Of a DNA stretch of 64,000 bases, positions 31,875-62,492 are shown piece after piece. The DNA comes from Trichoplax adhaerens (lineage: Eukaryota > Animalia > Placozoa). The DNA lies in NCBI RefSeq assembly GCF_000150275.1, contig NW_002060966.1, positions 340,581 to 404,580 on the forward strand. Direction: 5' to 3'. Positions within the stretch are counted from its first letter, which is position 1, and the number at the start of each line of letters is the position of its first letter. The notes under the pieces were generated by a model. That model had not been told where the DNA came from. It ran no database searches and worked only from the letters and a program-made list of their open reading frames with translations. A program made the translations under genes and the position numbers.

Positions 31875-32654
31875 TTAATAATATCTTAGATTATAATTAT
31901 AATTACTGGTTGCTGGCGTATATTTCCTTAAAAATAAAGATACTTCCCGATAGCTCTGGTTATAGAGTTGGCTAAAGATGTTTTTATTTTGGTAGCTGTA
32001 ATCACGAATATCAATAGTACGAATTTTCTTCCAATCAGGCATACGTTCAACATTTCTTGTTAACGCCGGATGGTATAAAACAGAACAGACATGGCTATAA
32101 CCTTGACGTTGTCCTAGACTTTGTAGCAATAATAGTAGCATTAAGCTAATACATTTACCGCGGTACTGTGAAGAAACACATGTACCATCGATATAAAGGA
32201 TATGATTAGGGTCATCATAGTCTTTCGCAGAGAAGTTTTCAAGCAATAGACGTGTTATATCCATGATAGGGGCAACCTTTTTTCCATACAAGTCCTCCAA
32301 GTCTGTACATACTTCAGCTATGGCTGTGCTAAATAAATAAGCTCCAGTAACACCGGCCACGTCCCCATCACTACTTTTAGCGACTATGGCAACATTATTT
32401 TTTACTGCTTCATTGAAGCGTGATAATGCTACAGGTTGATAATCTTCTTTACTTAAACTTATGGCTTTAAAAAACATGTTTTCTTGACTATAGGTATGAG
32501 CCAAAATTTCTGCAGCTTGTACAGTATCGGATGCTTCCATTAGTTGATATTTTATATCGTGTTTAGGATCGAAAATTTCCGTTAAATTCTCATCGTGAAA
32601 TGTTTTAGCTAATGAAAAGCACCATTGGACATGATTATGAGAATTAGCCGACAT
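31875..32654 (-). CDS. GNAT-family N-acyltransferase (AANAT-like), subfamily A, intronless, 259 aa
   Basis: First ATG at 32654 (the ORF track starts at an upstream TTG); YIDGTCVSSQYRGKCIS motif-A region; paralogous to 36243 and 39244. Confidence 0.85.
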   Translation of the reverse strand: MSANSHNHVQWCFSLAKTFHDENLTEIFDPKHDIKYQLMEASDTVQAAEILAHTYSQENMFFKAISLSKEDYQPVALSRFNEAVKNNVAIVAKSSDGDVAGVTGAYLFSTAIAEVCTDLEDLYGKKVAPIMDITRLLLENFSAKDYDDPNHILYIDGTCVSSQYRGKCISLMLLLLLQSLGQRQGYSHVCSVLYHPALTRNVERMPDWKKIRTIDIRDYSYQNKNIFSQLYNQSYREVSLFLRKYTPATSNYNYNLRYY

Positions 32655-32886
32655 CTTCAAATAAAGAGAGATGAGAAGAATATAATAATGCAGTCCAGCT
32701 AGTCAGAAATATTCAAATTTAAATTTCAGTTGATAACATACATATAATGTATATCATCCAGATGACTTAAGTACATCATTTATTATCGAGTAGTAAGTTG
32801 CTTATTGGGAAATTTGAACTTACTAACTCTATCGCGGACAAATAAAACGAACTTAAGAATAATAATTGATATGTTGAGATGGTTTT

Positions 32887-32894
32887 CACGTGAT
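32887..32894 (-). promoter_or_regulatory. E-box ATCACGTG, 233 bp upstream of ATG
   Basis: The same motif sits at a similar distance upstream of five other paralogues. Confidence 0.6.
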
Positions 32895-35800
32895 GTCTGG
32901 CTATGCCCCTTAGTTTATTATTCATTGTCTACTTTTCTTTAACTGGTATAGTGATTGAATGGCCAATATGAGAGACCTATAACCATATGTTTTAAATTTA
33001 ATGCATTTAATTTGTATAATTATGTTATAAGAGTATAATCGATTCTTTAAGATCTGTCTTGACGTAGGATTTGTGTGGATACAGTTTACAGATCTTGCAC
33101 TTTAATTTCTTAAATGATAAACTACTTTGCATTACCCAAGTAAATATTTTACGATTAGGCTGCATTTTATTCCTACTATTAATTGCGATAGAGTGCTTAC
33201 TCAGCATTACTAAGGTGTTGCTATTCTTATTATTGAAAGAAAGAAAAGTTTCTGTACATAAGAGATTGTCGTTATGAAGTAAAAAGTAGTTGTAGCCGTA
33301 GCTCTAGGTTTATGTTGATATAGCAAAGTTGTTCACATTCAACAAAATATCTTATAATATGTATATATAGTAATAGTGTAGTAATTACAATATTAGTACA
33401 GAAAGGCGTATGGAAGAGTACAGTAGCTTAAAATAATGGCAAGCGATTGAATATATTTACTAGATTAAAGAAGAAAAATATAGGTAAAGTTAAAATTATG
33501 TTACTTTACACGCCATTAATCTTTTCATTACTGATCGAATAGAAGAGGAATAGGCACTATTCTTATAAATATGGCCGATTGATTTCATGCAGTTTCAGAT
33601 CCCATTTTAATATTGATATCTACTGATAGAGCGCTAGCTTGCATTTATTTCATATCTAGATTATTTTTGTCCTCTGTGCAATGATCTCTCTCGCATGTAA
33701 AATTGGTCAATCTATTAGAAAGAAGAGTTCTGTGAGAAAGTTATTAGGTGCTTATGATTTTATGCTACCACATAGGACGATAGATATTCGAAATTAGTAC
33801 TTAAACTTTCTAGAAATATAATTTCTAATCATAATGATTGTCGAATTGGCATTATAATTAGCCACCAAGAATAACGATCGTAACCATAGTTATTTAAATT
33901 TAGTTTATTTAACTGATGCACGAAGTATACTCTTTATTCGTTAAATCTTTGTCAATTTCAACATTTGAATAGCATAGCTTATTGACCTTGCAATAATTAC
34001 AATTGGGTTAATTGTTGTCTTGAATGCCCTAGTAGACAATTTGGAGTTAAATAACTCGTTATTCTTACACATACTTAAAAAGACTTAATATACTCTTGGA
34101 GCTGTCATTATATTAAATGTGCACCAAAGAACGTATTAAGTTTTGTAATTTATAGTAATATTGAAGTAAATTTTTAAGGTACCGTATTAGTGAAGGTTAG
34201 AGATCTTGTTTATATCATATTTGGCCAGAATATGTTATATGTCATATTCCAAGAATACATTGATGAATTGCCATCTTTCAAGCTAGCAATAAACAAAATC
34301 AAGTAAACTCATCTTTAATAGCACTAATATTCAGTAACGTACAAAAGAGACTTTTTAGTAAACACGTATGCACATTGTAATAATGAAGTAATTTTAAGAG
34401 GTACTGCTTTCATGCTTCATTTTTGGCCACTAAATTTGATTTAAACTTGCGTATATTGCATTATGGACCTGAATCAGAGAATAAAAATCTAGGCTTTGCG
34501 ATTGTTTACTAATAGTATCCGTTGTTTATGATGTTATACTGAACTAATTTAAAGAGCTAGCATTCGTTTTTGTAAACATACTGATAAATTGATGTCGCCA
34601 ACGATGCCTACCTAATTAAAAGAACTACATATTAATTTGTGTCAAATATTGATTATGGAACTAGATTTCATATAATTTTCAATTATATAGTTCAAGGTTA
34701 AAATGTATCAATCTGACATATAGCGATGCATAGCAGATCGTCAAGCATAATTTTAGATAGTTAATAATTAAGATCTTAAAATTGTTAGAAGCGTATCAAT
34801 TATCCATTTGAAGGAACTTATAACTTAAAATGCTCGCAATTCTTTAATTTGAATCTTACGTATTACACAAGGCCAACTAGAGAGCTTTAATGAAGCCAAT
34901 TTGTCCACAATAGACAGCGAAGTATGCATTGTACAACATTTATGTCTGGTGGTTCACTCAATAACGTTTTGCGATAGATTAGTTATGACTAAAGATTGGA
35001 TCAATCGATAAGAGAGAACTTACTAGCTATTATGGAGGTTCATACATGATGCTTTCGTAGTAAGATAGGCTTTTCATTGCATTATTTTTGGAAAAAGACA
35101 GAAAATAACTTCTTTAACCGTTGCTGAAAAACAACTGAGCTGTTGCGGAAGTAGCGATAAAAATGAGATAGACAACACTAGCAATTACAAGCTATATATG
35201 AAATAGAAATCAATTATATTAACACCTTATTGTCGATCATATCGCACATAAGGCATATTCAGTAATTAGAACGTACCAAATAGACCCTGCCATAATAGCT
35301 CCCTGCTAAGCATGCATAGCTGTGGGTTATTTATACAATAAATTGAAACAATCTATGTCAACAGAATCTAGCCTATGTCGAGATAAACTATTTTAACGCC
35401 ATAATAACGAGTACTTCAACTTTCAATAAAGTCTAATGTTATATCTGTAATTGATTGCTCTACCTAATTTACAATTGAAGTATCGTAGGAAAATGGTCAT
35501 GATCGATAGTGTCAACATCATCTAGAAATAAATAGCTACCTTTTCGATCTTACAAAATAAAGTGCAACTTTGAATCACTGTTGCATAACGCAAAAATTGA
35601 AAGCTATTTTCGATTCTGTGCTCCTTGAGGCGAAAACTATCAACTGCATTGTCTATTTGATGGTTAATACTTTAATACAATCTAATATATAGCGATACTC
35701 TCCACACAGAAAAATAGAAACTGCTCATAATCGCTGTCCTGATATTGCTTTTGAAGACTTTCATAGTAAATAATTTTTAATTTGGAATGATTTAGTTTTT

Positions 35801-36242
35801 GGGTATGTTGGATTATATAACGGTAATGATCACAAAATCGCTAACTGAAGCAATCATGCTAACCAATTATTCTTGGCTGGTTTGGATGAAATACCGCTTA
35901 TTTAAGATACGGTCGTTCTTTTTTAAAGGGTTGTATAGCAATAATGATTTACAAGCCTTCTAAGCCATTTTTACAACATTTATTTTATAAAATATCTTAT
36001 AATACATGTATATACCATGCATCAGCAATCAATTGGGGTATCCTAGTTTAATTATTCATTCATAATATCAAAATTTCCTTACAAAATGCTTTATTGAATT
36101 CAGGTAACTTGTAGACAAACTCATCAGATATACATCTTGTATCAATCTTTTTCGATTCGATAAATATTTTGAACAAGAAAGTTGCTCGTTGTTTTACAAC
36201 CCTTCATAAAGGTTAATCTATAGTTACCATTCTTAGCTAGTG

Positions 36243-36992
36243 CTATATCTTACTTGGTATAAATTTCTTAATGAACAGAGTAACATCACGATAGCCTTGA
36301 TTATACAGTGGAGCAAATATTTTTTCATTTCGGTAGCTATAATTGTTAACATTGACACTAGAGATTTTCTTCCAACCAGGCATATGTTCTACGTTTCTTG
36401 CCAAAGCTGGATGATATGCGATAGAACATACATGAGTAAAACTGCGACGCTGACAGATACTCTGCAATAGTAACGATAGCATCAGGCTGATGCCCTTGCC
36501 ACGGTACTGAGATAAAGCACATGTATCATCTATATAAATGATACGACTGGGATCATCGTAATCTTTGACTGAAAAATTTTGAAACAAAATGCGACTCATA
36601 TCCATGATAGGGGCTACTTTTTTTCCATAGTACTCTTCCAAGTTTACCTTGACTTCAGCTATAGCTGTATCTACTAAGTAAGCTCCACTAGCGCCGACCA
36701 AAACTCCATCTCTAGTTTTAGCGACCATTCCCATATTATCTTCCATTGCCTGTTTATAGCTTAATAATGCGCTAGGTAGATAATCTGCTTTACTCACACC
36801 CATTAATTTGAAAAACATATTATCTTGGCTATAAGCTTGTGACATAATCTCTGCAGCTTGCTGGATGTCCCAAGGCTTCATCATTTGATATTTAATATCA
36901 TTTTTCGGATCGTAAATTTCCGTTAGATTCTCATCATGGAATTTTTTAGCTAGTGATAAACTCCATTGCACATTATCTTGATAGCCTGTCAT
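36243..36992 (-). CDS. GNAT-family N-acyltransferase, subfamily A, C-terminal SKI (PTS1-like)
   Basis: 249 aa; YIDDTCALSQYRGKGIS; ends IPSKI-stop. Confidence 0.88.
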   Translation of the reverse strand: MTGYQDNVQWSLSLAKKFHDENLTEIYDPKNDIKYQMMKPWDIQQAAEIMSQAYSQDNMFFKLMGVSKADYLPSALLSYKQAMEDNMGMVAKTRDGVLVGASGAYLVDTAIAEVKVNLEEYYGKKVAPIMDMSRILFQNFSVKDYDDPSRIIYIDDTCALSQYRGKGISLMLSLLLQSICQRRSFTHVCSIAYHPALARNVEHMPGWKKISSVNVNNYSYRNEKIFAPLYNQGYRDVTLFIKKFIPSKI

Positions 36993-37229
36993 AGTTCGAT
37001 AAGGATTATAAACGTATGATGATGGTATTCCGTTAGATAGGATTTATTCCTTGGTCGATAACGAATAAATTTTGATAATAATCTAATAGTTTGAACCCTC
37101 CATAAGATCAGTCAACAAGAAATTTAGTCAAAGCACACTTGTATTAGCATTAAGCAGTTTGGAAATTTATGCTGTTGGTACGTGATTGAATAATAATATA
37201 GAGATAATGATCGTTTACTTTGATAACAT

Positions 37230-37237
37230 CACGTGAT
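37230..37237 (-). promoter_or_regulatory. E-box ATCACGTG, 238 bp upstream of ATG
   Basis: Palindromic ATCACGTGAT. Confidence 0.6.
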
Positions 37238-39243: not shown

Positions 39244-39999
39244 TTACAGTTTGCTAGAGGTGAAATTGCTTAGAACCAACGAAATTTCACGATAACCTTC
39301 TTCATACAGCTGGCTGAAGATCTTTTTATTCTGATACGTATAGTCACGGATATCAAGGATAGAAACCGTCTTCCACATTTGCATTTGACTTACTGATCTT
39401 GCCATTGCAGGATGATAGGAAATGGAACAAACCTGGTTTATACCGCGACGTTGGATTAAGCTTTGAAGAATTAACGAATTCATGATACCTATACCTTTAC
39501 CGTGATATCCAGACGAAACACATACATCATCGATATAGTAGATCTGATTATATTTACCATATTTTTTAGGAGGAAAATTTTTAAATAAAGTGTGGCTCAC
39601 ATCTACAATAGGAGCAATTTTCTTTCCATATATTTTTTCCAGATCGAGACCAAGATCGAATAATGCCGATGACAATAAATATGCAGCACCTGCGCCCACT
39701 ATTTTCCCTTCGTTAGTCGTAGAAATTAGCCCTATACCTTCTTCCAATGCTGTCTTAAATACTTCAATTGCAGTAGGTAGATAGTCTTCTTTGGTTATGT
39801 CCAATACTTGAAACATCCTGTTATTCTCAGCGTAACATTGTGCACAAATATCTGCAGCTTTTTCAATGTCCCATGGCTTAATTAAGCGATACTTAATATT
39901 ATTTTTACTATCGAAAATTTCAGTTAAATTATCTTGATGAAACTTTTTACCCAACGATAAACACCACTGGACGTTATTGTGATAGCTCATCGTATTCAT
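39244..39999 (-). CDS. GNAT-family N-acyltransferase, subfamily A, C-terminal SKL (PTS1)
   Basis: 251 aa; YIDDVCVSSGYHGKGIG; ends TSSKL-stop. Confidence 0.88.
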   Translation of the reverse strand: MNTMSYHNNVQWCLSLGKKFHQDNLTEIFDSKNNIKYRLIKPWDIEKAADICAQCYAENNRMFQVLDITKEDYLPTAIEVFKTALEEGIGLISTTNEGKIVGAGAAYLLSSALFDLGLDLEKIYGKKIAPIVDVSHTLFKNFPPKKYGKYNQIYYIDDVCVSSGYHGKGIGIMNSLILQSLIQRRGINQVCSISYHPAMARSVSQMQMWKTVSILDIRDYTYQNKKIFSQLYEEGYREISLVLSNFTSSKL

Positions 40000-43322: not shown

Positions 43323-43825
43323 TTATTGACGATTATCACCGCATGCTGATAGGGTTAAGTTTCCGATAGATGAAAAAATTCCGCGATAGCGTTTATCATA
43401 GAGTTGACTGAAGATCTTTTTATTGCGATAAGTATAGTTATCGGTATCAACAACAGAAAAAGCCTTCCACGTTTCATTTTTTGAACAGTTCTTACCGATG
43501 CAGGATGATATAAAATGGAACAAATCTGCGTGATACCACGATGTTGGATCAAACTTGGCAGAATTAATGAATTCATACCAATAATACCTTTGCCACGATG
43601 TTCATGCAAAACACATATGTCATCGACATAGTAGATATAGTAAAACTTATAACATTCTGGAGTTGAAAAATATTGAAAGTAATTTGTGACTTATATCTAC
43701 AATTAGAGCAATTTTCTTTCCGTATATTTTTCCAGATCTATGCCAAGATTGAATAATTCTACCGATAGTAAATAGGATGTACTGATACCAGCAATTTTTT
43801 CATCTGAGAGAATAATTATCATCTA
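43323..43825 (-). pseudogene. GNAT pseudogene, C-terminal two-thirds of a 39244-like paralogue
   Basis: Fragments KIAGISTSYLLSVELFNLGIDLEK / IYGKKIALIVDISH / YYVDDICVLHEHRGKGI..YHPAS / NYTYRNKKIFSQLY lie in shifting frames with stops. Confidence 0.85.
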
Positions 43826-43942
43826 TCATCGTTTCTTTATCGATACAAGTACTTTTGATATTGCTGCAGGAAAAATACTAATGTATATAGATGATTATAT
43901 TATTGTTAGTTAATCATCCTTTCAACTATATGAGAATCGTAT

Positions 43943-44700
43943 TCATTTTTTATTATTTTTCCCTATGTCCTTGATAAAGATTTGCACTTCCTTGTAGCCT
44001 TTTGCTACCAAATCCAGAAAGACTTTTTCATCTTTATAGGTATATTCATTTAAATCGATAGAATAAATTAATCGATAGCCAACTGCAAGAGCTCTTTTTG
44101 CATGATTGGATTGAAAATAGTGGTTATCATTTTGTCATAACCATGTCGAGCACTTATTGCTTCTACTAAAAAACCGCTCAAGAATCCAATAGCCTTACTA
44201 GCATATTTTTCACCTCTCAAGCAAGCAACATCATCGATAACGATCATTTTCTTTGGATCAAAGGATTCTTTTTTCTCTGCGTCTTCATATAATTGCATCA
44301 TACAATCCATAATCGGAGCCATAGCTTCTCCATAGTTATTAATAACGTTCTCGCCCGCTGTCACTTCAGTTACCTTACTATAAACATAACCAATTCCTAC
44401 TCCAACTAATTTATTATTTTCTATATCTCGAGCAACGATTGCTAATTTATCTTCCATCGCCAATCGGCATTCAAATTTAGCAGCAAGGATATACTGCTCG
44501 ACCGTAACACCTCGACTTTTATAAATTTCATTTTGTTCAATAAAAGAGATAGCAATGACTTTCATAGCTTCATCCATATCTTCTTCTTGCATAATACTAT
44601 ACCGTATATTGTTTTTTTCATCGACGATAAAGGGAGAATCGCTATCTCGAAATTGTTTATAAAGCTCTAGTACATGTTCCATAGGATTGTGTTTAGCCAT
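43943..44700 (-). pseudogene. GNAT subfamily B (MAKHNP type) copy with a 1-bp frameshift (pseudogene or sequencing error)
   Basis: Near-identical to 58782 and 61734. The T-run at 44095-44099 has 5 T versus 6 in the 58.9-kb copy; restoring one base gives a 252-aa ORF ending at TGA 43943-43945. Confidence 0.8.
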
Positions 44701-44927
44701 GTTGAAATCGTTGCAGTTTGATGTTTAGTAATATAATTGAACCTATCCACAAATGAAATAGTACAGTAAATGACTGTTAGATACAGGAGTACTTTAGCAA
44801 AGACAGATTGAAAGTGATGATGGAGACCACAAGAACTTCTATCTGCGATTTTAGCCGTAGGTGAAAAGGGCTGAGATCAAGAATGTGCCAAGGTCATGTG
44901 AAAATCGATGATGGAGCTAGCAATCAC

Positions 44928-44935
44928 CACGTGAT
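44928..44935 (-). promoter_or_regulatory. E-box ATCACGTG, 228 bp upstream of ATG
   Basis: caatcacCACGTGAT. Confidence 0.55.
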
Positions 44936-46299
44936 AGTGTACTGGGACTGCTATATATATTGTACACAATTTCATGCAAGGATTGATTTTTATAGGGCTT
45001 TAAATTAAATTAAATTAATTTAATCAGTTGTTTACCAAAGCGTATCGAGTTCATTGTTATGGAAATCAAGATTGATTTGCTCCGTTTTCAGAGAGTTTAA
45101 TCTTCTCTATCTTGCATTCATAATGGACTACCCATGGTATACAGTAATGCATGTTTCTATCGGTAGTCTAGGCTATTCTTAGTCTAAATTCGTTTCTAAT
45201 CCACTGTTGTAGAACTCCATATTTAGATAAGCCCTATTTCACTTTGATACTATAGGGCTCTAGTGCTACTCTAATCCGATTGCATTGCAGAAATCTCGTA
45301 AACAGACATAAGCTCTTCTTCGTACTCATTCGCGTTTCTCAATCATTTCATCCTGTCATACTTTTAACATTCTTAAAGGGCATCTTCATGTTTCGATGAC
45401 ACAATGTAGTGTTTCCTTAATTTACGGTGATTAATAAATCATTGGAAGGTATTCTGCATTCAATTCTATAACAGTAAACTACTTTACCTCATATAATGTC
45501 CGTTATAGTTTTGATTTAGCTTTATTTCTTATTATAATTTTTCAATAATGATGGATGATGTTAATCATTTAGCTTCATATCAATGTATAATAGTGATGCT
45601 GAATATACTTTTAGTCTTAGAATAAAATCGATAAGTCTGTAAATAGACTGCAGCACTTAGAGAGGCCTAGGACAGGTGATAAGGCAAGCGATGATGGATA
45701 GACTTTGAGCTTAAAATTAAATAAGTCTGTTATTACATTACAAAACTATGTGAACCTATTTTGAGCATAACACTTACACTACTTGTTTCAGGAGACTGAT
45801 TAACTACACTATTCATGGTAAGAATTTGAAGTTAAGAAATGAAGATCGTGGTATAAAGATGTATAACTTCATCATAGCAATGCAAATAATTTAAAAGTAG
45901 GTTAAATCTGTGCTCTTTTGGTTCAATAAGATTATCTATTCCTAGGATAATTTATGGTACTGCCTCATTTATGTGCATTATTTGTTCTATGTGCAATGTA
46001 CCTTAATTAATTAATAAGCTAAAAATCTGTTTAAGAAGCTATGTAACCTGATCTTAGCAATGCTGTCACGGTACGAACTACTGTGAAGAAAGAGCTATCT
46101 AAATTTGGTTTATATAATATAGTGATAATATATTACAACTAGTTACTTACAATAAGAGTTACTCTAATTATAAATGTGTTACAGTAAATTTAATGTTGTG
46201 CTGTAATGTACACTGAAATGATTCTGTGAATGCACATGTTGTTGTCTGAATGTCAAAAAATTAGTTAGTAGATGTTCTCACCTAGGTATTTTTATAAAA

Positions 46300-46495
46300 T
46301 GACTCATGAATGTTTGCTGCTTTACAAGGGTATAAAGCCCGTCAGATAGTTGAACAAAGTAGTTCTCAATTGTATAGTTGAGTTTAACGTAGAATCAAAG
46401 GCGTCTAAATTCTTGTGAGTAGGGATACTGAATTCCGAAGACTATAGTAATTTAGAGATTTATTTTACGTTATCCTTGTCACAAAGCTGGTTTGT
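46300..46495 (+). repeat. Dispersed ~200-bp repeat, copy 2 (TGACTCA + TATA box)
   Basis: Aligns with 30869-31070. Confidence 0.75.
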
Positions 46496-48488
46496 GACAA
46501 ATGCAAATAATAATTCATAAATTAGTTGTCTTCAACTCCGGATGTTCAATAAGATCAACTATCATTCTGTTAATTATTACCGAAACTTCTTTCACACATA
46601 ATAATTACGTACTGTACTTATACTTCCAATTTTATCTATATAATAGCGTACAATCACTTTTCAAAATGAGTATGTATTTAAAATTACTTGTGTATTCCTA
46701 GACACACGGACGAAAATTTTTAACAATTTTGGATAACTTTCTAATTCCGAGTGTATCATAGAGTATATGGAATAGGCTATAAATAATTGATCTTTTTTAG
46801 AAGCAATAATAACCTGATAGTTAACAACTGAAATGCGCTTTAGCTACTTTACTGGTTCATTATTTTCATTGTAAGTAAACATGCAGTTTTCTTTTCAAAT
46901 GATAAATATCATTATCCGTTAACATAGCGTATCATATGGAACTTTAATGACGAATTTTTATTAGTATAGCTTGTTTATTATTAATAACATAACAATCCCA
47001 CCCTCCCGTTAATACAGAGTGAGGAACTTTATAGCTAGGGCTCACTTCCTTCTATTATATAATTATCATTCATAGATCTTACTAATGGTGTCATATATGG
47101 TACTCTAGTGATATGAGATTAAATGCCATGACAAATTTAAAACATCACAACTAGCTAATTAGATAACCAAAATTAATAGCCAGCAATTAATTATAATATG
47201 TGCATGATTCTGCAGGAACTACTCGACGAAGAATTCACCTCCAAATTTGAAAATAGAGGAAATCAAGTAGAGTAGTGCCCGCTTTCTATCGCTTTGATAT
47301 ATGACATGTACAAACAATCTTGTACAACCTTCCATTTTTAATTTAACTTTATTCAATTTAATCCAATAAAGTAGAATAACATGCAAATTTCTGGTTACCC
47401 AGTGATTGAATAATCTAATTTTTGATCGCTGTTTAGTTTGAATGATATACTACCGCTGTTATAAAATACTTCTATTTTGGTTAACATCCATGAGTAAAAT
47501 GGCACTGAACCGAAATTTTTCTCTGCTATTGAATTAAATATTTCTCTGTAGTACAGTCGCAAATGAGCCCAAAATTACGATTGCAAGATTGTAGTGAGAT
47601 CATTTCAACTTGCATGTTAGATTATAAGATTGTCTAGGTACCCATTCGTAAAAGATGGTTCTATTACGTGGACTGTTTACTTCACAATATGGTATAGTCT
47701 ATTCTTAGTATGTTTATTTTCCCCTACTCTATAGCGTAACTCTATGGATGTAAATCTACATTGAATAATTCACACTGTAGAAATCTACTGATACTCTAGT
47801 TGAATTGTATCGTAGAGCTAATTTAACGTAAAAGTAAGATACTTTTAGAAGCCATTCGCCTTGATAAGAAATTCCTCCTACTGTGCTCCCTACGTTATAA
47901 AAGCTGTCTTCATTCGTCTGTCTAGTTAGTGATTCCTGTTAGTTATACGTTATGCGTCTACGATTTACCAGTACCAATCCTAGGTACTATAGCTATCCGA
48001 CTAGTCATGTCGTTACTCGCGCTGTAGCCTTGGATGGTTATCCTCTGCATGTTACCTCAATAAAAACTAGTATTTTACAAGTTATTCTTTTACAATTTAT
48101 TGATTATTCGACGCTTACTCTTCTGAAGCATCACAGTAATGCAGCATATATAGATACAATAGTACAAAATAATGTAGCTTTCAATTTTCTTGTAATATAT
48201 TGCTTAGGGTGGAATACATAGCTGTTCATTTAAACGAGAACTTTACTAGTTTATATCATGAATTAACGGTTACAGGCAATTTTAGTTCTTGCTTTAGTTT
48301 GAAGAAGACGCTTTATTACATTATCTTTCCGTCATTTTCAAGGTAAATAGCTTGGTTAAGCGGCTTTATAGTGGACTTCAATTCAATCGTTGTATGCAAA
48401 ATGAAATGAAAGGGTATCTTGTGTAACTGTTGATTGAACTGGTGCTCCTTTTCATCATTTTTATATAAAAATAGATGCAGCATTTTGA

Positions 48489-49238
48489 TTATAGCTTACT
48501 CGGATTTAGTACTCCTATGTAAAGTGAAATTGAGCGAAAGCCATTCTTAGATATGGATTCATATACGCGTTCTTTACCATCATTTCCTGTAATACTGGCT
48601 ACTTCGATACTATTAATTTCTTTCCAATTTGGAAGCATATCCAAATCATTTTTGGTGATTTTGTGTATGGCGATAGCTGCAGCATGTGTATAGCCTTTTC
48701 TTTCTGCTAATACTAACGCAAATTCTGGCAGTATGTAACCGACACCTTTGCCTGATGCATTCTTTAGTACAGATACTTCATCAAGATAAACTATTCGATC
48801 GATGCCACCATATTGATGCCATGGTGTTGTTTTAAATAGTTCTACAAGAGCATTAAGAAGTGGGACAAGTTTACTACCACAGCGGTCATACGATTCCTGT
48901 CCATGGGTAACATTTATTGCTGTGGATAATGAATAAGCTACATGAACACCTATCATTTGGCCTTGGCTATTACGAGCTATGCATCCAATTCTACTCTTAA
49001 CACTTTCTTGACAGGAAAAAGTAGAATCTTTAAGATATTCATCGGCAGACATACTAATAATTCTATAAAATGGATTGCTAGCCATACATTGTGCACTAAT
49101 TCGACTTGCTTCAGCGATATCGCTCTTTTCCATTATATGATAGGAAATTTTATTCTTGAAGTCGTATAAATAGTTCTCATTTCCGGATCTAAATTGCCGT
49201 AGAAGCTGATCATACCATGCTAAATCTTTTCTAAACAT
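48489..49238 (-). CDS. GNAT-family N-acyltransferase, divergent subfamily C, C-terminal SKL (PTS1)
   Basis: 249 aa; VYLDEVSVLKNASGKGVG; ends NPSKL-stop. Confidence 0.88.
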   Translation of the reverse strand: MFRKDLAWYDQLLRQFRSGNENYLYDFKNKISYHIMEKSDIAEASRISAQCMASNPFYRIISMSADEYLKDSTFSCQESVKSRIGCIARNSQGQMIGVHVAYSLSTAINVTHGQESYDRCGSKLVPLLNALVELFKTTPWHQYGGIDRIVYLDEVSVLKNASGKGVGYILPEFALVLAERKGYTHAAAIAIHKITKNDLDMLPNWKEINSIEVASITGNDGKERVYESISKNGFRSISLYIGVLNPSKL

Positions 49239-50689
49239 TTCGGCTGGTAATTAATTAAAGAATAAAAATTGGAGTTATTTTCACGAACGGCTATAGTATA
49301 CATAATACTAGATCGTTTATGGTGGCATAAACTCTCTTCTAGTGGTGCTAACGAATTGTTACACTAATTTTAGTTAACGATAAAAGAATCTATTTTTCGA
49401 TTCAATAGATTTGTGTTAAATCTCTGAATGGCTACTAACATTATTTCAGTTGAGTAATCAAACTTTCCGGCATAAGTTACTATCATAGTATAGTATTACC
49501 TTGAATTTGGTTTCCTATTTAGTTTTGCATTGATTCTATTAACATAGGTGACGAAATTGGTCATTAATTTTACAAGATTGAGGATAATTTAACAGTCCTA
49601 CTTGTTTAGAATAGATTAATGCCTAATTTAGCGCCTTAATCTAACAGCTATCTATGTAGAAGGTCCTATAGGATATGCTACAATCTTGAACTAGTTATCT
49701 TATTGAATAATACCTTCAATCTATTAAGACGAAGGCAAGATCTAGAATTGATTTAATGGTTGACTTGATAGGACTAGTGAACTTTGTTGCATTAATAAAT
49801 GTATAAATACCTTGTCTTACCGTTTTAACTAATTCAATTATAAGTATAACATATGATAATATTGAAAACGCCAAAGTCTTGAATTAGTCTATTCTGTTTA
49901 ACTTTACTTTGATTATATCAGAAGAACAACGTAATTCGTCACAAATCTTTATGATCGACAACTGAATAATCTTCTTGGCCTTCAAAGCTTGTATTAAAAA
50001 GTCTGTACTTATCGTACAATACAAGTATACCAGAATTTCGAATTCTGGTAAAAGGTACTGAGTTCTGCTAGGCAACCAAGGTGCAGTTCACCGCTATTTA
50101 TTGCTACTTATGTATACTCTTCGATGTCGCCAGCTTTTATCCTTAGACTTGTTTTTATACTTAATGGTGATAAATAGAGCCATCGTTATTTTCAAGGCGT
50201 TGCTTATGATGTAGAGCGTCTAAGATACGTGATCATTAAACATTCTTGTCTATAACAATATAGCAATTTCTAGTTCTGTATTGATTTTATTTATGCATGT
50301 ATGCTTTTGGATAATGCAGCTTATTATCTATAGTATCCAGAATAAAATTATCGCATTACGTTTCAATTAAAATTAGCATAATTTCTATATAGTTTAATTC
50401 AATGCTATTAAGCTAAGTAAGTAGATATTTTTAATCAGCAATGCTTTTTCGCTTATTTTATTTCATAATTTTGCGAATTGCTTACGATGTAGTAATTATT
50501 CCATTCTTATACCATTAAAGTGGTAGTTAATAAATGTAGAGTCGTATGTATTATTGGTTGTAGCTCAGAATTCGTGTTACCATTGTTTAAGATTTAGTTA
50601 CTGATAAGATTTGAACACCTAGATATTATAGAGTGTGAACTTTAATAATTGGTGGCAAGTACATTAAAGTAAATTAATATTATACCAGC

Positions 50690-50945
50690 AATTTTGCCAT
50701 CGTCTGTGAGAATAATTACATCTATACCTTCGTTCGGTTGCCGTGAGTAAATACTCTTCTTTAGAGATACCCAATACATTAAAAGACTTGTCATCGTCCG
50801 CATAACATTGCGCACAAAGACTAGCAGCTTCTTCAACATCTTTTTGTCGAATCAAGTGATAGTTGATAGTATTTCGACTATCAGAAATTTTAATTAATTT
50901 CTCTTCTTAGAACTTTTTACGTAAAGACAAGCACTACTAGAGGTC
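50690..50945 (-). pseudogene. GNAT pseudogene, N-terminal third of a 39244-like paralogue
   Basis: **CLSLRKKF*EEKLIKISDSRNTINYHLIRQKDVEEAASLCAQCYA..KEEYLLTATE, then a frameshift into GIDVIILTDDGKIAG; in-frame stops. Confidence 0.85.
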
Positions 50946-51428
50946 ACTTTGCTTGCTCCTGATGTTCGTTAAGAATTCGCAATGATGTTTCTTTTCGATA
51001 AGCCTCGTGTTCTAAATTAAAGTCAGCGGTAGTTGTGTCAAACCAAAGTATAGTTCAGATAGCTAATTTATAAATGCCAATAGATTGAAAGTTTTAAATT
51101 GAATGAAAATGATAATAATATAGTCTTTTTATATACTTCCATCAGCGTCTTTCCACGAAAGAATTACAAATAATAATAATAAACATTCCTAGCTTCCTAA
51201 GTTTCTTAATTGTGCTTTCCTGATAACTGAATAATTAGCAGTACAGCAGCCATTAATACCAATCGATGATGATTTAGTTTAATTAGTGTAAGAAATAGAT
51301 TTTTCTTGATAATCAGAAGTTAATCGAATCGATTTTTAAATACGTGTGCATTAATAGCAACTAGCAATCTACGGATGATTAATTGACTAATAGATGCATT
51401 ACGTGACCTGAAGTGTAGTTGCAGGAAC

Positions 51429-52214
51429 TCATAATTTTGCTTGTGAAGAGCTCCCTAATCTATTACTCTCCTCATTCAAATAATAAATAAAAATTTGGGC
51501 TCGATAATAACCCTGATCCAGTAATTCATGAAATACTTTCTGACCCTTGTAAGTATATTCGTCGAAATTGATGGAATGAATGAGTTTATAACCTATAGCA
51601 TGTGCTCGTCTTTGCATCACCGGATTGATAGCCACCGTCAGCAAATAGGAATAACCATTTCGAGCACTTACTGCTCTGATTAATCCACCGCATATAAATC
51701 CAATGGCTTTACCAGCGTACTTGACACCTTGTACGCAAGCAAGATCATCCATTATAACCGTTTTATGCGGATTAAATGATGGCATTTGTTCTACTTTTTC
51801 GTATAGTTGTAACATACAATCCATGATTGGTTCTATAGCTTCCATGTGCTTGTTCTCTGCGTTGTTTGCATCAAAAGCTTGAATTGCTTTGGTGTAAGAA
51901 TAACCCGCTGCTACTCCGACTATCTGATTTGTTTCTGTATCTCGTGCAACGATGGAAAGCTTTTCCTCTGCTGATATTCGACATTCATGGGATGCTATTT
52001 CAACATAGTCATCAAAAGTAATGCCTCTACATTTATACATTTCGTTTTGCTGTGTGAAAGCCATAGCAAGAACATTAGCCGCCTCGTCTATGTCGTCTTT
52101 TTCCATAATGCTATAACCAATACCATGATGATGATCGATGATAAATGAAGCATGACTATTTCGAAATTGATGTACGATTCTTTTTACATGTTGTACAGTC
52201 TTGTCTTCAGTCAT
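51429..52214 (-). CDS. GNAT-family N-acyltransferase, subfamily B, C-terminal AKL (PTS1)
   Basis: 261 aa; IMDDLACVQGVKYAGKAIG; ends SQAKL-stop. Confidence 0.88.
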   Translation of the reverse strand: MTEDKTVQHVKRIVHQFRNSHASFIIDHHHGIGYSIMEKDDIDEAANVLAMAFTQQNEMYKCRGITFDDYVEIASHECRISAEEKLSIVARDTETNQIVGVAAGYSYTKAIQAFDANNAENKHMEAIEPIMDCMLQLYEKVEQMPSFNPHKTVIMDDLACVQGVKYAGKAIGFICGGLIRAVSARNGYSYLLTVAINPVMQRRAHAIGYKLIHSINFDEYTYKGQKVFHELLDQGYYRAQIFIYYLNEESNRLGSSSQAKL

Positions 52215-52414: not shown

Positions 52415-54126
52415 CATCAACTAAATTAGGCCTTCGATTCTACTTATTGCTTCTACTCTTACATTTATTATGAAATATTATTATCAACGATGATGTATAA
52501 ATACATAGGCGCACTTATAGCATTGATTTTTAAATTAGATCAATTTGAAGGAATAAGCATGATGCTTCTTTTGCATCGCAGCATTTATGTAGATGTGATG
52601 TTGCTAGGAAAGTCTTTAAACTCGCTAATTGTGAGTGTAATAAGTGTATCTCACAACTACTCTATCTAATCGAGTCTAATTTTCACAAATACAGTCATCT
52701 CAGACAGATTGAACTTAAAATAATTTTTTATTAGTGTTAAGCATCGTCGAACAATAATTAATATATTATTAACTAAAACAAGAATCTAATCTAAAATATC
52801 CTGAGCTCAAAAGAATTGCAAGCTCCTATCTGCTATCCTTAAATGTATTTAGTTTAATCTATTTACGGCTATAAAGTTGCCTACAATCAGACTTGAGTCA
52901 TTAAACGGAAAAATTTTCCTCAAATAAATCATCAATATGTTTACTGTACGAATTGATCTACTTAAAATATCATCTCTCTTCTCTTATTGTCCAATACTAG
53001 GTGCTAGACATCTTGACAATGGCAGTATATCGAATTAAAGCAATATACTAAACTAATAATACTTTAATATCAAGACTTTGCTGTTGTATAATTCGATGAC
53101 AACCTTTCACATGAGCAGTTATACATATCCAACCAATTTTTTGTTGATAAATTCGTTACAGCTTTGATTTTATAGTCGTCCTAATCTGAATCTTCTTGTT
53201 CATTATAATATAAAGGATAGCAATCGTATAATATTAGCATCATGATAATATCTATTCTTAGCAACTATGCTATATCAAATATAGCTATCAATACAATCAA
53301 CTGTGGAGTTCATTACTACAGCAAGATTGACAAATATGGCTATTATTAATGTCGGAACTTAAGCAAGGCCAAAGCATAAATGAATTGTTATATGCTTTAA
53401 TTTATTTAGATTTAGCTTCGGACTTACTAGCTATTACCGATTATTATATATTAGTTCTATCTGAAGATGGGACTAATCAATAATATAGAATTTACAAGTT
53501 ATCTTATTTCAGCGATACCGTAACAGCGAATGTTCATATCATGATAACGATAACACTGATATTTTAATCTTAATTAAACTAGGTACCAACTGGAAGTAAT
53601 CAATCATCACCACTGTTTTAATCAATAAGCATTTTCAAATCAATATCTTATAGTCTCAACGAAAAAGTGTAGCGAGCTAATTTGGGTTATGTAAAAATGA
53701 TAGCAATCTCTATCAGCGAAATAACTGCCCCAAAATAATGCTCTTTGCTTAAAAATTGGTTGTGTTAATCATCAAATTCTTAAAGATTATAATTCCTTTC
53801 TTACAATTTTTTATCACGGGCTGTGAGTCTATAAGATCAAAACCTAGCTTTCTATCCATTGCATTTGCGGTTATAATCTCATTGGTTGGCAGCATAATTC
53901 TTAGATTACCAGAACTTAAAATAATTTTCATCACCTTCGAATAGATGACGTAAGTATAAATGCAATGCGAGCAGTGATTTATAAAATGAGTAATTTACTA
54001 TTTGACTGCTATATTAATTAATGCGGAGAACATTCGTAACTGTATAAAATTCTTATTTAGAGATGACTATAAAGTAAATGAAGCCAGTTAAATGATATAA
54101 TAAGGGGGAAATTGCCGTTAAGAAAA

Positions 54127-54912
54127 TTATAATTTCGCTTGTGGAGAGCTTACTAATTTTTTACAATTATCGTTTAAATAATTTACGAAAATTTGTCCAC
54201 TATGATAGCCTTTTTCGACCAAATTGGAAAAGACTTTTTCGCCTCGATAAATATATTCGTCCAATTTTAAACTATGAAGAAGTTTATAACCCAATGAACG
54301 AACTCTTCGTTGCATTACCGGATTGAGAACGACCGTTAGCAAATATGAATAACCTAATCGAACACATAATGCTTTGACTAGTCCAGCACATAGGAATCCT
54401 ACCAATTTACCTGTGTATTTTTCACCTCTTACAGCTGCAACATCGTCGATAATCACCGTTTTATCAGGATTGAAAGATTCCATTTGCTCTACTTTTTCTA
54501 CTAATCGCAGCATACAATCCATCACCGGTGCAAGCGCTTCTTTCGGCTGGGTAGTTTCCTCATTTTCTGCAAATGATTGAAGTGCTTTGTTATAAGAGTA
54601 TGCTACTGCTACTCCAATTATCTGATTGGTTTCCATATCACGAGCGATTATGGATAACTTATCCTCAACAGACATTCTGCATTCATGGATAACCGATTCG
54701 AGATAGTCATCCACAGTAATTCCTCTCGTTTTGTACATTTCATTTTGTTCAATAAAAGACTTTGCCATCATAGCAGCGGCCTCATCGATTTCGTGTTCTT
54801 CCATGATACTATAACGAATTGGATAACGAGGATCATTGAGAAAGGTAGCATGACCTTTTTGGAATTGGAGAATAATTCTATTTACATATTGTGCCCTCTC
54901 GTAACTGTCCAT
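54127..54912 (-). CDS. GNAT-family N-acyltransferase, subfamily B, C-terminal AKL (PTS1)
   Basis: 261 aa; IIDDVAAVRGEKYTGKLVG; ends PQAKL-stop. Confidence 0.88.
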   Translation of the reverse strand: MDSYERAQYVNRIILQFQKGHATFLNDPRYPIRYSIMEEHEIDEAAAMMAKSFIEQNEMYKTRGITVDDYLESVIHECRMSVEDKLSIIARDMETNQIIGVAVAYSYNKALQSFAENEETTQPKEALAPVMDCMLRLVEKVEQMESFNPDKTVIIDDVAAVRGEKYTGKLVGFLCAGLVKALCVRLGYSYLLTVVLNPVMQRRVRSLGYKLLHSLKLDEYIYRGEKVFSNLVEKGYHSGQIFVNYLNDNCKKLVSSPQAKL

Positions 54913-57540: not shown

Positions 57541-57662
57541 TGTAACAGTCCAAACTATAACCCTAGTCTAGAATAGACTGGGAGTATAATCTAGGCTAGC
57601 CTAGTTTATATCCCTCTAGGCCGGAGTATACCCCCATCTTGCATACAAGTATATCAAGTAAT

Positions 57663-58686: not shown

Positions 58687-58781
58687 CAAGTACTTTTGAT
58701 ATTGCTGCAGGAAAAATGCTAATGCATAGATGATTATAGTATTGGTAGTTAATCATCCTTTCAACTATATGAGAATCGTAT

Positions 58782-59540
58782 TCATTTTTTGTTATTTTTC
58801 CCTATGTCCTTGATAAAGATTTGCACTTCCTTGTAGCCTTTTGCTACTAAATCCAGAAAGACTTTTACATCTTTATAGGTATATTCATTTAAATCGACTG
58901 AACAAATTAATCGATAGCCAACTGCAAGAGCTCTTTTTTGCATGATTGGATTGAAAATAGTGGTTATCATTTTTTCATAACCATGTCGAGCACTTATTGC
59001 TTCTACTAAAAAACCGCTCAAGAATCCAATAGCCTTACTAGCATATTTTTCACCTCTCAAGCAAGCAACATCATCGATAACGATCATTTTCTTTGGATCA
59101 AAGGATTCTTTTTTCTCTGCGTCTTCATATAATTGCATCATACAATCCATAATCGGAGCCATAGCTTCTCCATAGTTATTAATAACGTTCTCGCCCGCAG
59201 TCGCTTCAGTTGCCTTACTGTAAACATAACCAATTCCTACTCCAACTAATTTATTATTTTCTATATCTCGAGCAACGATTGCTAATTTATCTTCCATCGC
59301 CAATCGGAATTCAAATTTAGCAGCAAGGATATATTGCTCAACTGTTACACCTTGACTTTTAAAAATTTCATTTTGTTCAATAAAAGAGATAGCAATGACT
59401 TTCATAGCTTCATCCATATCTTCTTCTTGCATGACACTATACCGTATATTATTTTTTTCATCGACGATAAAAGAAGAATCGCTATCTCGAAATTGTTTAT
59501 AAAGCTCTAGTACATGTTCCATGGGATTGTGTTTAGCCAT
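58782..59540 (-). CDS. GNAT-family N-acyltransferase, subfamily B (MAKHNP type), no PTS1, 252 aa
   Basis: First ATG at 59540 (the ORF track starts at an upstream GTG); VIDDVACLRGEKYASKAIG; ends GKNNKK. Confidence 0.88.
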   Translation of the reverse strand: MAKHNPMEHVLELYKQFRDSDSSFIVDEKNNIRYSVMQEEDMDEAMKVIAISFIEQNEIFKSQGVTVEQYILAAKFEFRLAMEDKLAIVARDIENNKLVGVGIGYVYSKATEATAGENVINNYGEAMAPIMDCMMQLYEDAEKKESFDPKKMIVIDDVACLRGEKYASKAIGFLSGFLVEAISARHGYEKMITTIFNPIMQKRALAVGYRLICSVDLNEYTYKDVKVFLDLVAKGYKEVQIFIKDIGKNNKK

Positions 59541-60734
59541 GTTGAAATCGTAGCTGTTTGTTGGTGTGTAATATTGTTGAAACCTATCCACAAGTGAATA
59601 GTATATTAATAATTAGCCACTAGTTAGAGAATTACCGTAGCAACGATAGATTGATAGTAATGATAGAGACAACAAGAATCTTTACCTTCGATCTTAGCCG
59701 TAGGGGGAAAATGGCTGAATAAAAGAAGGTGCCAAGGTTGTATAAATGAAAATCGATGATGGTACCGGCAATCATCATGTGACAGTATGAATAAACTATT
59801 AATCCAGAATTTTATTCATGGATTAATTTCTATCGGGTTTAAATTAATTCAACCAGTTGTTTACTAAAGCGTATCGAGTTCATTGTTATGGAAATCAAGA
59901 TTGATTTGCTCCGTTTTCAGTGGGTTTAATTAATCTTCTCTATCTTACATTCATAGTGGAATGCCAATAGTGCTGAGTATGTTTCTATCGGTGGTCTAGA
60001 TTATCCTTAGTCTAAGTTCATACCCGCTCCACTATAATAGTGTATAACTCCATATTTAGCTAAGCTCTATTTTACTTTGACACTGTGGGATTCTAGTGAT
60101 ACTCTAATCCGATTGCATTGTAGAAATCTTCCTAATATCTGAGCTCTTCTTCCTTTACTCTTTGGTTTTTCTCAATTGTTTCCTTCCGCTGTGCTTCTAA
60201 CATTCTATAAGCTATTTTCATACGTCGATAACTTGATTTAGTGTTCACTTAGCTTCCTGCGATGGCGTTAACTTTAATGTTATCACTAACGAACAATATA
60301 TATATATATATAGATCACTGAGTTTACTAAAGCTCAGGAGGCATTCCGATGAATTATTAGATGGTATTTCGTATTCAATTCTGCCTTACTATACTATCTT
60401 TACCTCAATGCAATATCAGTCATCGTTTTAACTTACCTTCATTTCTTAATAGCTACTTTATTGGTTTAATTATTTAAATTGTAGTTTAATATACAACCGT
60501 ATTTTCGTTTACCTGAGGCAAATATCATCATTCCTTGACATAACTTATCATATCGGACATCACGGATCAATTTACATCGGTAGAGCTTCTTAATTGCATT
60601 ATAATGTCCTGCCCATGATGTCTTAGAGGGTACTAAAGTTAGGTGGAAATCATTGCTATAGCAAATTTAGCACAGCATAACTAGCCAGTTGGAGAACCAA
60701 AATGATTGCCTGGCTATTCACTATAATACATGTA

Positions 60735-61640
60735 CGTTAGCAATTATTTCATCAACCCAAGCATATTTGATTCTTCTAAAGAAAAAAAATGAGAATATAG
60801 ATAAAAAATGGCTATTATCAACTGTATCAAGAATAGAATACTTTATTGATTCAGATTTCAGACATTAAATATGTTTATAACTATGTAATAAACATTTATT
60901 TCATCATCAATACAAGTATCTTAGAGGCTTCCTAAAGGAACAAAATTAGAACATAGGTAAAAAGTGGCTATCATCGACAGCACCAAGAATGGAATATTTT
61001 AATAATTGAAAGATTAAATTAAACATGTTGATAATTGCACAATAAGTAATATCTATATCATTGATATAAGTATTTTTAATGCTCCTAAAGGAGCAAATCA
61101 GAACACCATTAACAGCATCAAGAATAGAGTATTTTACTGATTGAGACATTAAACATGTTTATAACTACAACATGCAATCAGCAATTATTTCATTATCAAT
61201 ACAAGTACCATTGATCCTCCTAACGAAATTAAACTAGAATACAGATGAAAAAAACTATCATCAACCACATCAAGAATAGAGGATTTTATTGAATGAGAGA
61301 ATAAAAATGTTTAGAACTATGCAAGAAGCAATTAGTTTATCACCAATGTAAGTAACTTTAATGTTCTTAAGGGAAAAAATTACACTACCATCAACAGCGT
61401 CAAGAATAGAGTAATCTGCTGATTGAGATATTCAATATGCATTTAACTACGGCATACAATAAACAATTCCTTCATCATCAGTAAAGGCATCTGCAATGTT
61501 CCTTAAGGAACAAAATAAAAAAATAGACAAAAAGTGACTATCATTAACAACAACAAGAATAATGTAATTTATCGATGGAGAAGTTAAACATATCATAACT
61601 ACGATATACAATAAGCAATTGTTTCATCGTCAATCTTATA
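60735..61640. repeat. Degenerate ~130-157-bp tandem repeat, about 6 units
   Basis: Core at about 60811, 60967, 61107, 61255, 61385 and 61538. Confidence 0.8.
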
Positions 61641-61733
61641 AGTTTTGTTGATTTTTCTTCAGGTAAAATATTAATAAATTGATGATTATAGTATTGTTAG
61701 TTAATCATCCTTTTAACCATTTGAGAGTTATAT

Positions 61734-62492
61734 TCACTTCTTATTATCTTTGCGTATGTCCTTGATAAAGATTTGCACTTCCTTGTAGCCTTTTGCTACT
61801 AAATCCAGAAAGACTTTTTCATCTTTATAGGTATATTCATTTAAATCGACTGAACAAATTAATCGATAGCCAACTGCAAGACTTCGTTTTTGCATGATTG
61901 GATTGAAAATAGTGGTTATCATGTTGTCATAACCATGTCGAGCACTTATTGCTTCTACTAAAAAACCGCTCAAGAATCCAATAGCCTTACTAGCATATTT
62001 TTCACCTCTCAAGCAAGCAACATCATCGATAACGATCATTTTCTTTGGATCAAAGGATTCTTTTTTCTCTGCGTCTTCATATAATTGCATCATACAATCC
62101 ATAATCGGAGCCATAGCTTCTCCATAGTTATTAATAACGTTCTCGCCCGCTGTCACTTCAGTTACCTTACTATAAACATAACCAATTCCTACTCCAACTA
62201 ATTTATTATTTTCTATATCTCGAGCAACGATTGCCAATTTATCTTCCATCGCCAATCGGCATTCAAATTTAGCAGCAAGGATATACTGCTCGACCGTAAC
62301 ACCTCGACTTTTATAAATTTCATTTTGTTCAATAAAAGAGATAGCAATGACTTTCATAGCTTCATCCATATCTTCTTCTTGCATGACACTATACCGTATA
62401 TTATTTTTTTCATCGACGATAAAGGGAGAATCGCTATCTCGAAATTGTTTATAAAGCTCTAGTACATGTTCCATAGGATTGTGTTTAGCCAT
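61734..62492 (-). CDS. GNAT-family N-acyltransferase, subfamily B (MAKHNP type), no PTS1, 252 aa
   Basis: Near-identical to 58782 and 43943; ends RKDNKK. Confidence 0.88.
   Translation of the reverse strand: MAKHNPMEHVLELYKQFRDSDSPFIVDEKNNIRYSVMQEEDMDEAMKVIAISFIEQNEIYKSRGVTVEQYILAAKFECRLAMEDKLAIVARDIENNKLVGVGIGYVYSKVTEVTAGENVINNYGEAMAPIMDCMMQLYEDAEKKESFDPKKMIVIDDVACLRGEKYASKAIGFLSGFLVEAISARHGYDNMITTIFNPIMQKRSLAVGYRLICSVDLNEYTYKDEKVFLDLVAKGYKEVQIFIKDIRKDNKK

Follow-up and report, generated by a model that had tools for sequence, protein, structure and literature searches.

We analysed a 64,000-nucleotide stretch of the Trichoplax adhaerens nuclear genome (C1391:340581-404580; hereafter, at its full length, the window), which carries a tandem array of acyltransferase-like genes at 31875-62492. 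Together with the loci that continue past its end, the Trichoplax family is a tandem set of at least 14 insect-AANAT-like acyltransferase genes or loci, most of them with a conserved C-terminal signal predicted to direct peroxisome import. Our favoured explanation, to which we assign a probability of roughly 60%, is that the array represents a placozoan-specific, tandemly expanded GNAT clade of the insect-type AANAT/Ebony C-domain branch, in which copies bearing a type 1 peroxisomal targeting signal (PTS1) would N-acylate amines in peroxisomes and sister copies would act in the cytosol.

The array was delimited by tblastn of nine long open reading frames (ORFs) against the window and by a six-frame profile search of the whole T. 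adhaerens assembly (105.6 Mb, 1414 contigs). The results revealed 11 paralogous loci at 31875-62492, all on the minus strand, comprising eight intact genes, one frameshifted copy (g4) and two pseudogene fragments. The genome profile search found three further array loci past the window end: two are intact and have SKL ends, and the third is interrupted by a gap in the assembly. Subfamily A contains g1 (31875..32654; intact ORF, 259 aa from the ATG), g2 (36243..36992; 249 aa) and g3 (39244..39999; 248-251 aa). Subfamily B consists of g5 (coding sequence 48489-49238; 249 aa) and the two intact copies past the window. Subfamily C includes g4 (43946..44700; one frameshift at about residue 203), g6 (51179..52214, coding sequence 51429-52214; 261 aa), g7 (54127..54912; 261 aa), g8 (58782..59540; 252 aa), g9 (61734..62492; 252 aa) and the gap copy. 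Identity was 47-60% or more inside a subfamily and 22-27% across subfamilies, and each subfamily formed a supported clade (SH-aLRT 99-100); the three presumably differ in their substrates. The sequence-only reading of this DNA had described 11 same-strand paralogous loci in three subfamilies, and this was confirmed. It had also called the loci intronless, which holds for the single-exon coding sequences but not for the g5 mRNA, in which at least two introns are spliced from the 5' untranslated region (5'UTR).

We then assessed the fold and family placement of the encoded proteins. The AlphaFold2 (AF2) models were of high confidence (g6, pLDDT 94 and pTM 0.90; g5, pLDDT 95). A Foldseek search with g6 against the PDB returned 307 matches at E <= 0.001, and all 38 among the matches listed were GNATs. 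The best 23, with target-normalised TM scores of 0.76-0.82, comprised the Ebony C-domain, AANAT-like enzymes of mosquito, Tribolium and Drosophila, agmatine or polyamine N-acetyltransferases, and PBCV-1 A654L. A profile built from eight window paralogs alone matched Aedes aaNAT2 (4fd5) over almost its full length (E 1.3e-7). An exhaustive hidden Markov model (HMM) search yielded 328 relatives, from which a 72-sequence alignment was made; this broader profile matched 4fd5 at 4e-32, PBCV-1 A654L at 1.2e-26, Drosophila Dat at 6e-23 and the Ebony C-domain at 3e-21. Neighbours in the ESM Atlas were clusters of arthropod aralkylamine N-acetyltransferase, with structure neighbours including the Ebony non-ribosomal peptide synthetase (NRPS) family. 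The motif A loop (Q/R-x-x-G-x-G/A) was present in g2 (QYRGKG), g5 (NASGKG) and g6 (KYAGKA). The results demonstrated that the array proteins have a GNAT fold and belong to the arthropod-type AANAT-like branch, as had been proposed from the sequence. Judged from the titles of the Foldseek PDB matches, the characterised members of this structural branch all acylate amines.

Serotonin N-acetyltransferase chains were absent from the PDB profile matches, both at E <= 10 with the window-paralog profile and at E <= 0.001 with the broad profile, and the array proteins lie outside the vertebrate/non-vertebrate AANAT ('timezyme') family. Four Trichoplax paralogs of that classical family, the non-vertebrate AANATs (NV-AANATs), have already been published and are distinct from the array (PMC2897805). 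In a published survey of aaNATs across animals, Trichoplax was credited with NV-aaNATs alone and with no insect-type members (PMC4394704). Several long HMM matches are larger proteins that carry the domain C-terminally, and Ebony-like fusions exist, which we count as evidence for amine substrates.

We next examined the C-termini, scoring as PTS1-type any end of the form [SAC][KRH][LM] or an accepted variant with final I. Seven intact copies carried such an end: SKL in g3, g5 and the two copies past the window, AKL in g6 and g7, and SKI in g2. The five ends that had been read from the window (SKI, SKL, SKL, AKL and AKL) therefore stand exactly at the stops reported for them. By an estimate from residue frequencies, a C-terminal [SA]K[LI] is expected by chance at about 0.002 per protein. 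Tail length and the residues preceding the tripeptide vary between subfamilies, and the tripeptide is encoded by differing synonymous codons (AGT/AGC for Ser, AAA/AAG for Lys, CTA/CTG/TTA/TTG for Leu and GCA/GCG for Ala); the Ala codon of AKL, for example, is GCG in g7 and GCA in g6, and the stop codons vary too. This pattern indicates purifying selection on the tripeptides themselves. Divergent placozoan-like relatives (about 40% identity), found on 31% GC contigs of other samples, had SRL ends, with one GKL and one without a signal; SRL is a conservative change inside the PTS1 consensus. The tripeptide lies on an extra tail past the last strand of the family, which is coil or of low confidence in the models. 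The last 12 residues of g6 had pLDDT 41-64, and in g5 the last strand is followed by a six-residue coil, LNPSKL. The models thus predict an exposed and flexible C-terminal tail.

Whether splicing removes the tripeptides was checked in RNA-seq data (three runs) from a strain close to T. adhaerens. RNA contigs passed the stops of g5, g6 and g7 unspliced and continued 120-250 nt into the 3'UTR, so that in these transcripts the tripeptides are C-terminal, and for these three genes the sequence-only reading passed the splicing test that it had set itself. For g5, contigs covered 48366-49244 unspliced in all three runs; its last exon (48366..49243, minus strand) contains the coding sequence and about 120 nt of 3'UTR. 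Upstream lie two 5'UTR exons on the same strand (49500-49534 and about 49908/49946-50104) with GT..AG introns between; the exon joints 49243>49500 and 49534/5>49946/49908 read CT..AC on the plus strand, and the first intron ends 5 nt before the ATG. An RNA contig for g6 ran unspliced through the stop (51289-52082), and one for g7 spanned 53977-54190 and further, likewise through the stop. RNA coverage was zero over intergenic DNA and a pseudogene fragment, both of which were fully covered by a DNA-like run.

Public gene models treat these ends differently. The JGI models TRIADDRAFT_61571 (g2), 61580 and 61581 swap SKI or SKL for other tails (window 36243-36260 and the 3' ends of loci L009 and L012). 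In g2, the AGT AAG (Ser-Lys) codons contain a cryptic GTAAG donor, which is used in the JGI model. Models from Trichoplax sp. H2 retain the tripeptide in two of the three cases (TrispH2_010278, which is the g2 counterpart and keeps SKI, and 009711); the H2 match of 61580 (009710) is a partial model. Any peroxisomal proteome predicted from the JGI models, in which the signal is spliced away, would therefore have missed the array genes.

Four window genes, g1, g4, g8 and g9, lack a PTS1-type end. The g1 protein ends ...TSNYNYNLRYY, and its tail DNA, AGT AAT TAT AA, is one A short of AGT AAA TTA TAA, which would read S-K-L-stop. The g1 tail of Trichoplax sp. H2 is identical, which rules out an assembly error. 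Members of the g4/g8/g9 group stop about 12 codons early, at ...KK (...KNNKK in g4 and g8, ...KDNKK in g9). Two lineages have thus lost PTS1: g1 by a one-base deletion, and the g4/g8/g9 group, with which the gap copy is counted, by an early stop. Between diverged paralogs, signal-less copies included, dN/dS was 0.17-0.32 (g1 vs g2, 0.17; g8 vs g9, 0.21), indicating that the array genes are working genes. As the g4/g8/g9 copies are still constrained, they probably act in the cytosol, and the g1 lineage is probably cytosolic as well. The proposal of a peroxisome-targeted array is therefore partly supported: g2, g3, g5, g6 and g7 carry the signal, whereas g1 and g4/g8/g9 do not, so that predicted peroxisomal enzymes would stand beside others that probably work in the cytosol.

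The same genome offers a peroxisomal setting. Genes for the import machinery components PEX14 and PEX13 are present. Acyl-CoA oxidase is encoded by at least eight loci, of which five are clustered within 50 kb (C1408:5769000-5820000) and the others lie on C1307, C1395, C1144 and C1414; this expansion points to an enlarged peroxisomal beta-oxidation in Trichoplax. Reading the terminal exons one by one, with exons never joined, we found that the last exons of seven acyl-CoA oxidase loci end in SKI (three), SKL (three) or AKL (one). In the Trichoplax genome, SKI thus occurs on an enzyme that is a hallmark of peroxisomes. A PTS1 on Trichoplax acyl-CoA oxidase has also been tabulated previously (PMC3178647).

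According to the favoured explanation, each protein is translated from a single coding exon, with spliced 5'UTR exons upstream in g5 at least, and folds as a compact GNAT domain that has an additional helix at its N-terminus and, in most copies, a short flexible tail ending in [SA]-K-[LI]. PEX5 would recognise this PTS1, and the folded enzyme would be imported into the peroxisomal matrix. There, it is predicted to transfer an acyl group from acyl-CoA to an amine, releasing an N-acyl amide and free CoA; acetyl-CoA may be the acyl donor, or else an acyl-CoA that the expanded acyl-CoA oxidase system has shortened. The signal-less lineages (g1 and the recently amplified g4/g8/g9) would probably run the same chemistry in the cytosol.

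Several observations weigh against this reading. Array proteins fell below the Pfam Acetyltransf_1 gathering score (best 15 bits vs a cut-off of 20.7), while 31 of the 72 aligned homologues passed it, so the link to the Pfam family is transitive. Motif A is imperfect in g1 (QYRGKC, with C at the end), g7 (L at the end) and g8/g9 (first G replaced by S). We then counted active-site columns on the 72-sequence alignment, comparing 12 array-clade members with the 60 others and mapping Dat residues through the PDB profile alignment. The column of Dat Glu47, the general base of the F-x-x-x-E-P motif, is Asn in 12/12 array-clade members and Glu in 51/60 others. The Ser182 column is hydrophobic in the array clade and Thr in 44/60 others, and the Ser186 column is Met/Leu/Ile in the clade, with Thr in four, vs Ser/Thr in 52/60. 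With these columns replaced, catalysis may be altered or lost.

Further differences were found at positions that are counted here in g6 numbering. Position 194 is Val/Ile/Thr in the clade and Glu in 48/60 others; on strand beta-4, position 156 is Asp in 12/12 members and Phe in 36/60 others, and position 157 is Asp/Glu in 11/12 and Met in 32/60. Because the catalytic Glu and Ser residues of insect-type AANATs are replaced, the array clade is not a standard insect-type AANAT, which qualifies the earlier description of the proteins as resembling arthropod-type N-acyltransferases. The polar residues N57, D156, K169 and R185 are invariant in the clade. Given the invariance of the new residues and the purifying selection acting on the genes, we infer that the acid-base arrangement has been relocated or altered and has not decayed. 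An active site rewired in this way (Glu to Asn, and a new Asp on beta-4) is likely to differ from that of insect-type AANATs in its acid-base chemistry or in the class of substrate.

The same residues bear on the possibility that the proteins are imported but are not amine N-acyltransferases, being instead acyl-CoA-binding proteins, thioesterases, O- or S-acyltransferases, or non-catalytic pseudoenzymes. The clade-wide Asn at the catalytic Glu, the replacement of E194, T196 and S200 by hydrophobic residues, a glycine-rich motif A that is off consensus in several copies and the lack of a direct Pfam GNAT match above threshold would all fit such proteins. However, N57, D156, K169 and R185, together with the Asp/Glu at 157, suggest a remodelled active site and not a decayed one, the low dN/dS values also weigh against this possibility, and amine acylation is common to all characterised members of the structural branch. 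Moreover, GNATs often function without a dedicated general base. We therefore consider this possibility unlikely, although it deserves real weight.

A second set of adverse points concerns the targeting signal. RNA support is limited to g5, g6 and g7, and the C-termini of g2 and g3 rest on the H2 gene models. PEX5 was not identified, although no search was aimed at it. Six of about 137 non-placozoan representatives (about 4%) end in [SA]KL; three of these, P0008, P0070 and P0118, lie in clearly bacterial gene neighbourhoods, and P0132 lies beside a MatE gene. On bacterial relatives, [SA]KL could be due to chance, a family feature or a mark of host-directed effectors. As bacterial [SA]KL cannot be a PTS1 for the bacterium's own use, the tripeptide alone is no proof of import. 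One could therefore suppose that the tripeptide does not function as a PTS1 and that all the enzymes are cytosolic, [SA]K[LI] either reflecting the inherited composition of the family or having another use, for example in binding class I PDZ domains or in shaping the C-terminus. Terminal strands of the K-x-L type are frequent across the wider family, and SKL, SKI and SRL also match the S/T-x-hydrophobic pattern of PDZ class I. However, the PDZ pattern excludes AKL and GKL, while PTS1 accommodates SKL, AKL, SKI and SRL alike. The tripeptide sits on an added tail and has been kept, despite synonymous changes, in three subfamilies with differing tails; the acyl-CoA oxidases of Trichoplax end in the same three tripeptides. 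In the tree, the non-placozoan sequences ending in [SA]KL fall at scattered positions, none of them as sister to the placozoan clade. Taken together, these findings make a purely cytosolic array improbable.

In a tree of 151 rows, the array and three placozoan-like sequences formed one clade (SH-aLRT 99) on a long stem, and its sister, among bacterial and animal sequences, was not resolved; for this reason, we make no claim on horizontal transfer. That the array is bacterial, through contamination or a very recent unmodified transfer, is very improbable. In its favour, the coding sequences are intronless, and of the best non-placozoan HMM matches, P0007 and P0008 (both at E about 1e-20), one at least has a bacterial gene context and shares the N-terminal helix. 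However, the array is embedded in a long contig (at least 413 kb, with matches as far as 413546; public scaffold 752,879 bp) between animal genes for a leucine-rich repeat G protein-coupled receptor (LRR-GPCR) and an OCRL-like phosphatase, has the 31% GC of its surroundings and belongs to a monophyletic placozoan clade with no resolved bacterial sister. It is also syntenic in Trichoplax sp. H2, and the g5 mRNA has spliced GT..AG introns in its 5'UTR; these two points lead us to reject contamination. An ancient transfer into the placozoan stem may have occurred and would leave the functional reading unchanged.

Among the bacterial relatives, P0010 (L019:7001-9160) has a PLP-dependent amino-acid decarboxylase (Pfam Pyridoxal_deC) fused to an AANAT-like domain, an arrangement that looks like a one-protein module for making and then acylating an amine. 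Among the genes around P0008 (L020), P0070 (L018) and P0118 (L026) are an ABC transporter, Fic, a riboflavin operon, Toluene_X and D-Ala-D-Ala ligase. These three proteins, like P0132 (L027), P0123 and P0026, are extended at the C-terminus by tails with AKL or SKL as their last residues, several of the tails being Glu-rich.

We compared the array proteins with characterised systems. With the insect-type AANATs (Drosophila Dat/AANAT1, Aedes aaNAT2/5b/7, Tribolium AANAT, AgmNAT and polyamine NAT), they have in common a GNAT sub-fold that spans about 210 residues, a standalone architecture (about 210-260 aa), significant profile similarity and, in most copies, motif A. Identity to these enzymes is just 12-17%, and the array proteins differ in their extra N-terminal helix (about 25 residues) and C-terminal PTS1 tail, as well as in the Asn for Dat E47, the hydrophobic Ser182/Ser186 columns and the Asp-Asp/Glu pair on beta-4, where Asp156 is invariant. 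Our literature search found no peroxisomal insect-type AANAT. The amine-selecting C-domain of Drosophila Ebony (PDB 6dym), which acylates biogenic amines, was the best Foldseek match (E 1.3e-11) and the best single-sequence PDB match, with the same AANAT-like fold; in Ebony, however, this domain forms one protein with NRPS A and T domains, and its acyl donor is a thioester held on a carrier. As standalone proteins, the array enzymes are presumably CoA-dependent, unlike Ebony. The polyamine acetyltransferase PBCV-1 A654L (PDB 3qb8) was the second-best structural match and, as noted above, a strong match of the broad profile, but it is viral, 197 aa long and without a targeting tail, and it retains the E-P motif of the family.

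Two further systems resemble the array in function. The fungal SidF, an anhydromevalonyl-CoA:N5-hydroxyornithine transacylase, performs acyl-CoA-dependent amine N-acylation in peroxisomes and was the sole return of a literature search for a PTS1-bearing peroxisomal GNAT. It differs from the array in belonging to another GNAT subfamily, in being fungal and in serving siderophore biosynthesis, and Pfam searches gave no sequence or Pfam link between the two. The mammalian BAAT and ACNAT1-2 are peroxisome-targeted and conjugate peroxisomal acyl-CoAs to taurine or glycine, giving N-acyl amides and CoA (PMC10470208). They would be the closest functional analogues of the array enzymes as predicted; they differ in having an unrelated fold and mechanism without homology, with a Cys or Ser active site (PMC10470208) in place of the direct transfer of GNATs.

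A bolder form of the favoured explanation is possible, though we hold it only tentatively and think it somewhat more apt to be wrong than right. It proposes a peroxisomal amide-forming pathway of rewired AANAT-like GNATs, non-homologous to BAAT/ACNAT, that would couple the expanded beta-oxidation to N-acyl amines serving as signalling lipids, defence compounds or export conjugates. The cytosolic sisters would have arisen by repeated loss of PTS1, the array would be the first peroxisomal branch of insect-type AANATs, and the catalytic residue would have moved from a Glu of the alpha-1/alpha-2 region to an Asp on beta-4. Acetylation of polyamines by the array enzymes as a supply for a peroxisomal N-acetylpolyamine oxidase was also considered and found no support. 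Three intronless polyamine/spermine-oxidase-like genes of 490-520 aa were identified (L035, L036 and L037, at C1414:3948437, C1397:1096540 and C1414:3951484), two of them tail to tail about 1.7 kb apart; their proteins end ...NSNA, ...KIQS and ...YGLT, and none of the three carries a PTS1.

The remaining features of the array and its surroundings were also recorded. Two pseudogene fragments lie on the minus strand: a subfamily-A-like one at 43356..43870 (loci L014 and L017), with a truncated N-terminus, frameshifts and five stops, and an N-terminal, subfamily A-like one at 50733..50966 (locus L015), with three stops and zero RNA coverage. A recent 6.5 kb segmental duplication (94-98.6% identity) relates window 43977-50500 to C1391:405922-411003 (window-equivalent 65342-70423), each unit holding one subfamily C gene without PTS1 and one SKL-ending subfamily B gene. 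The g4, g8 and g9 units are mutually 87-97% identical over 1.3-1.5 kb, g4 and g9 being 97% identical. Runs of N break the array at window 62928-62977 and at C1391:404540-405930. One assembly gap truncates the subfamily C copy TRIADDRAFT_61579, and the real copy number may therefore be higher. The genome profile search also found one dispersed paralog, TRIADDRAFT_51782, on a different contig; it ends ...DLWIA and falls outside the array clade in the tree. GC content is about 31% across the window, the array being like its surroundings.

Some of the window proteins match T. adhaerens database entries exactly, and the window proteins are 99% identical to their counterparts in Trichoplax sp. H2 (TrispH2_010274 in the case of g6), where an OCRL-like inositol phosphatase likewise flanks the syntenic array. 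In the window, SRCR exons and an LRR-GPCR gene lie upstream of the array at 258-16296, including a 376 aa seven-transmembrane ORF at 15166-16296, and the flank at about 17000-30000 holds an OCRL/INPP5B-like phosphatase and a RhoGAP-like exon near 28300-28940. Word-indexed homology searches gave few placozoan proteins and no taxonomic picture. The TRIADDRAFT_6157x/6158x identifiers were cited nowhere in the literature searched, and the placozoan cell-atlas papers and supplements that we searched made no mention of the array genes, acetyltransferase or peroxisome.

If the proteins are imported and active, AANAT-like GNATs would for the first time be known to operate in the peroxisomes of an animal, as a convergent counterpart to mammalian BAAT/ACNAT conjugation. 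The exchange of Glu for Asn and of Phe for Asp throughout the clade is relevant to the position of the catalytic base in GNATs, and the sister genes with and without PTS1 offer a natural experiment on the evolution of compartment switching. Placozoans have no neurons, and their behaviour is coordinated by small secreted molecules. For this reason, the 14-gene family, which could produce N-acyl amines, would provide a concrete, testable source of signalling or defence metabolites in these animals.

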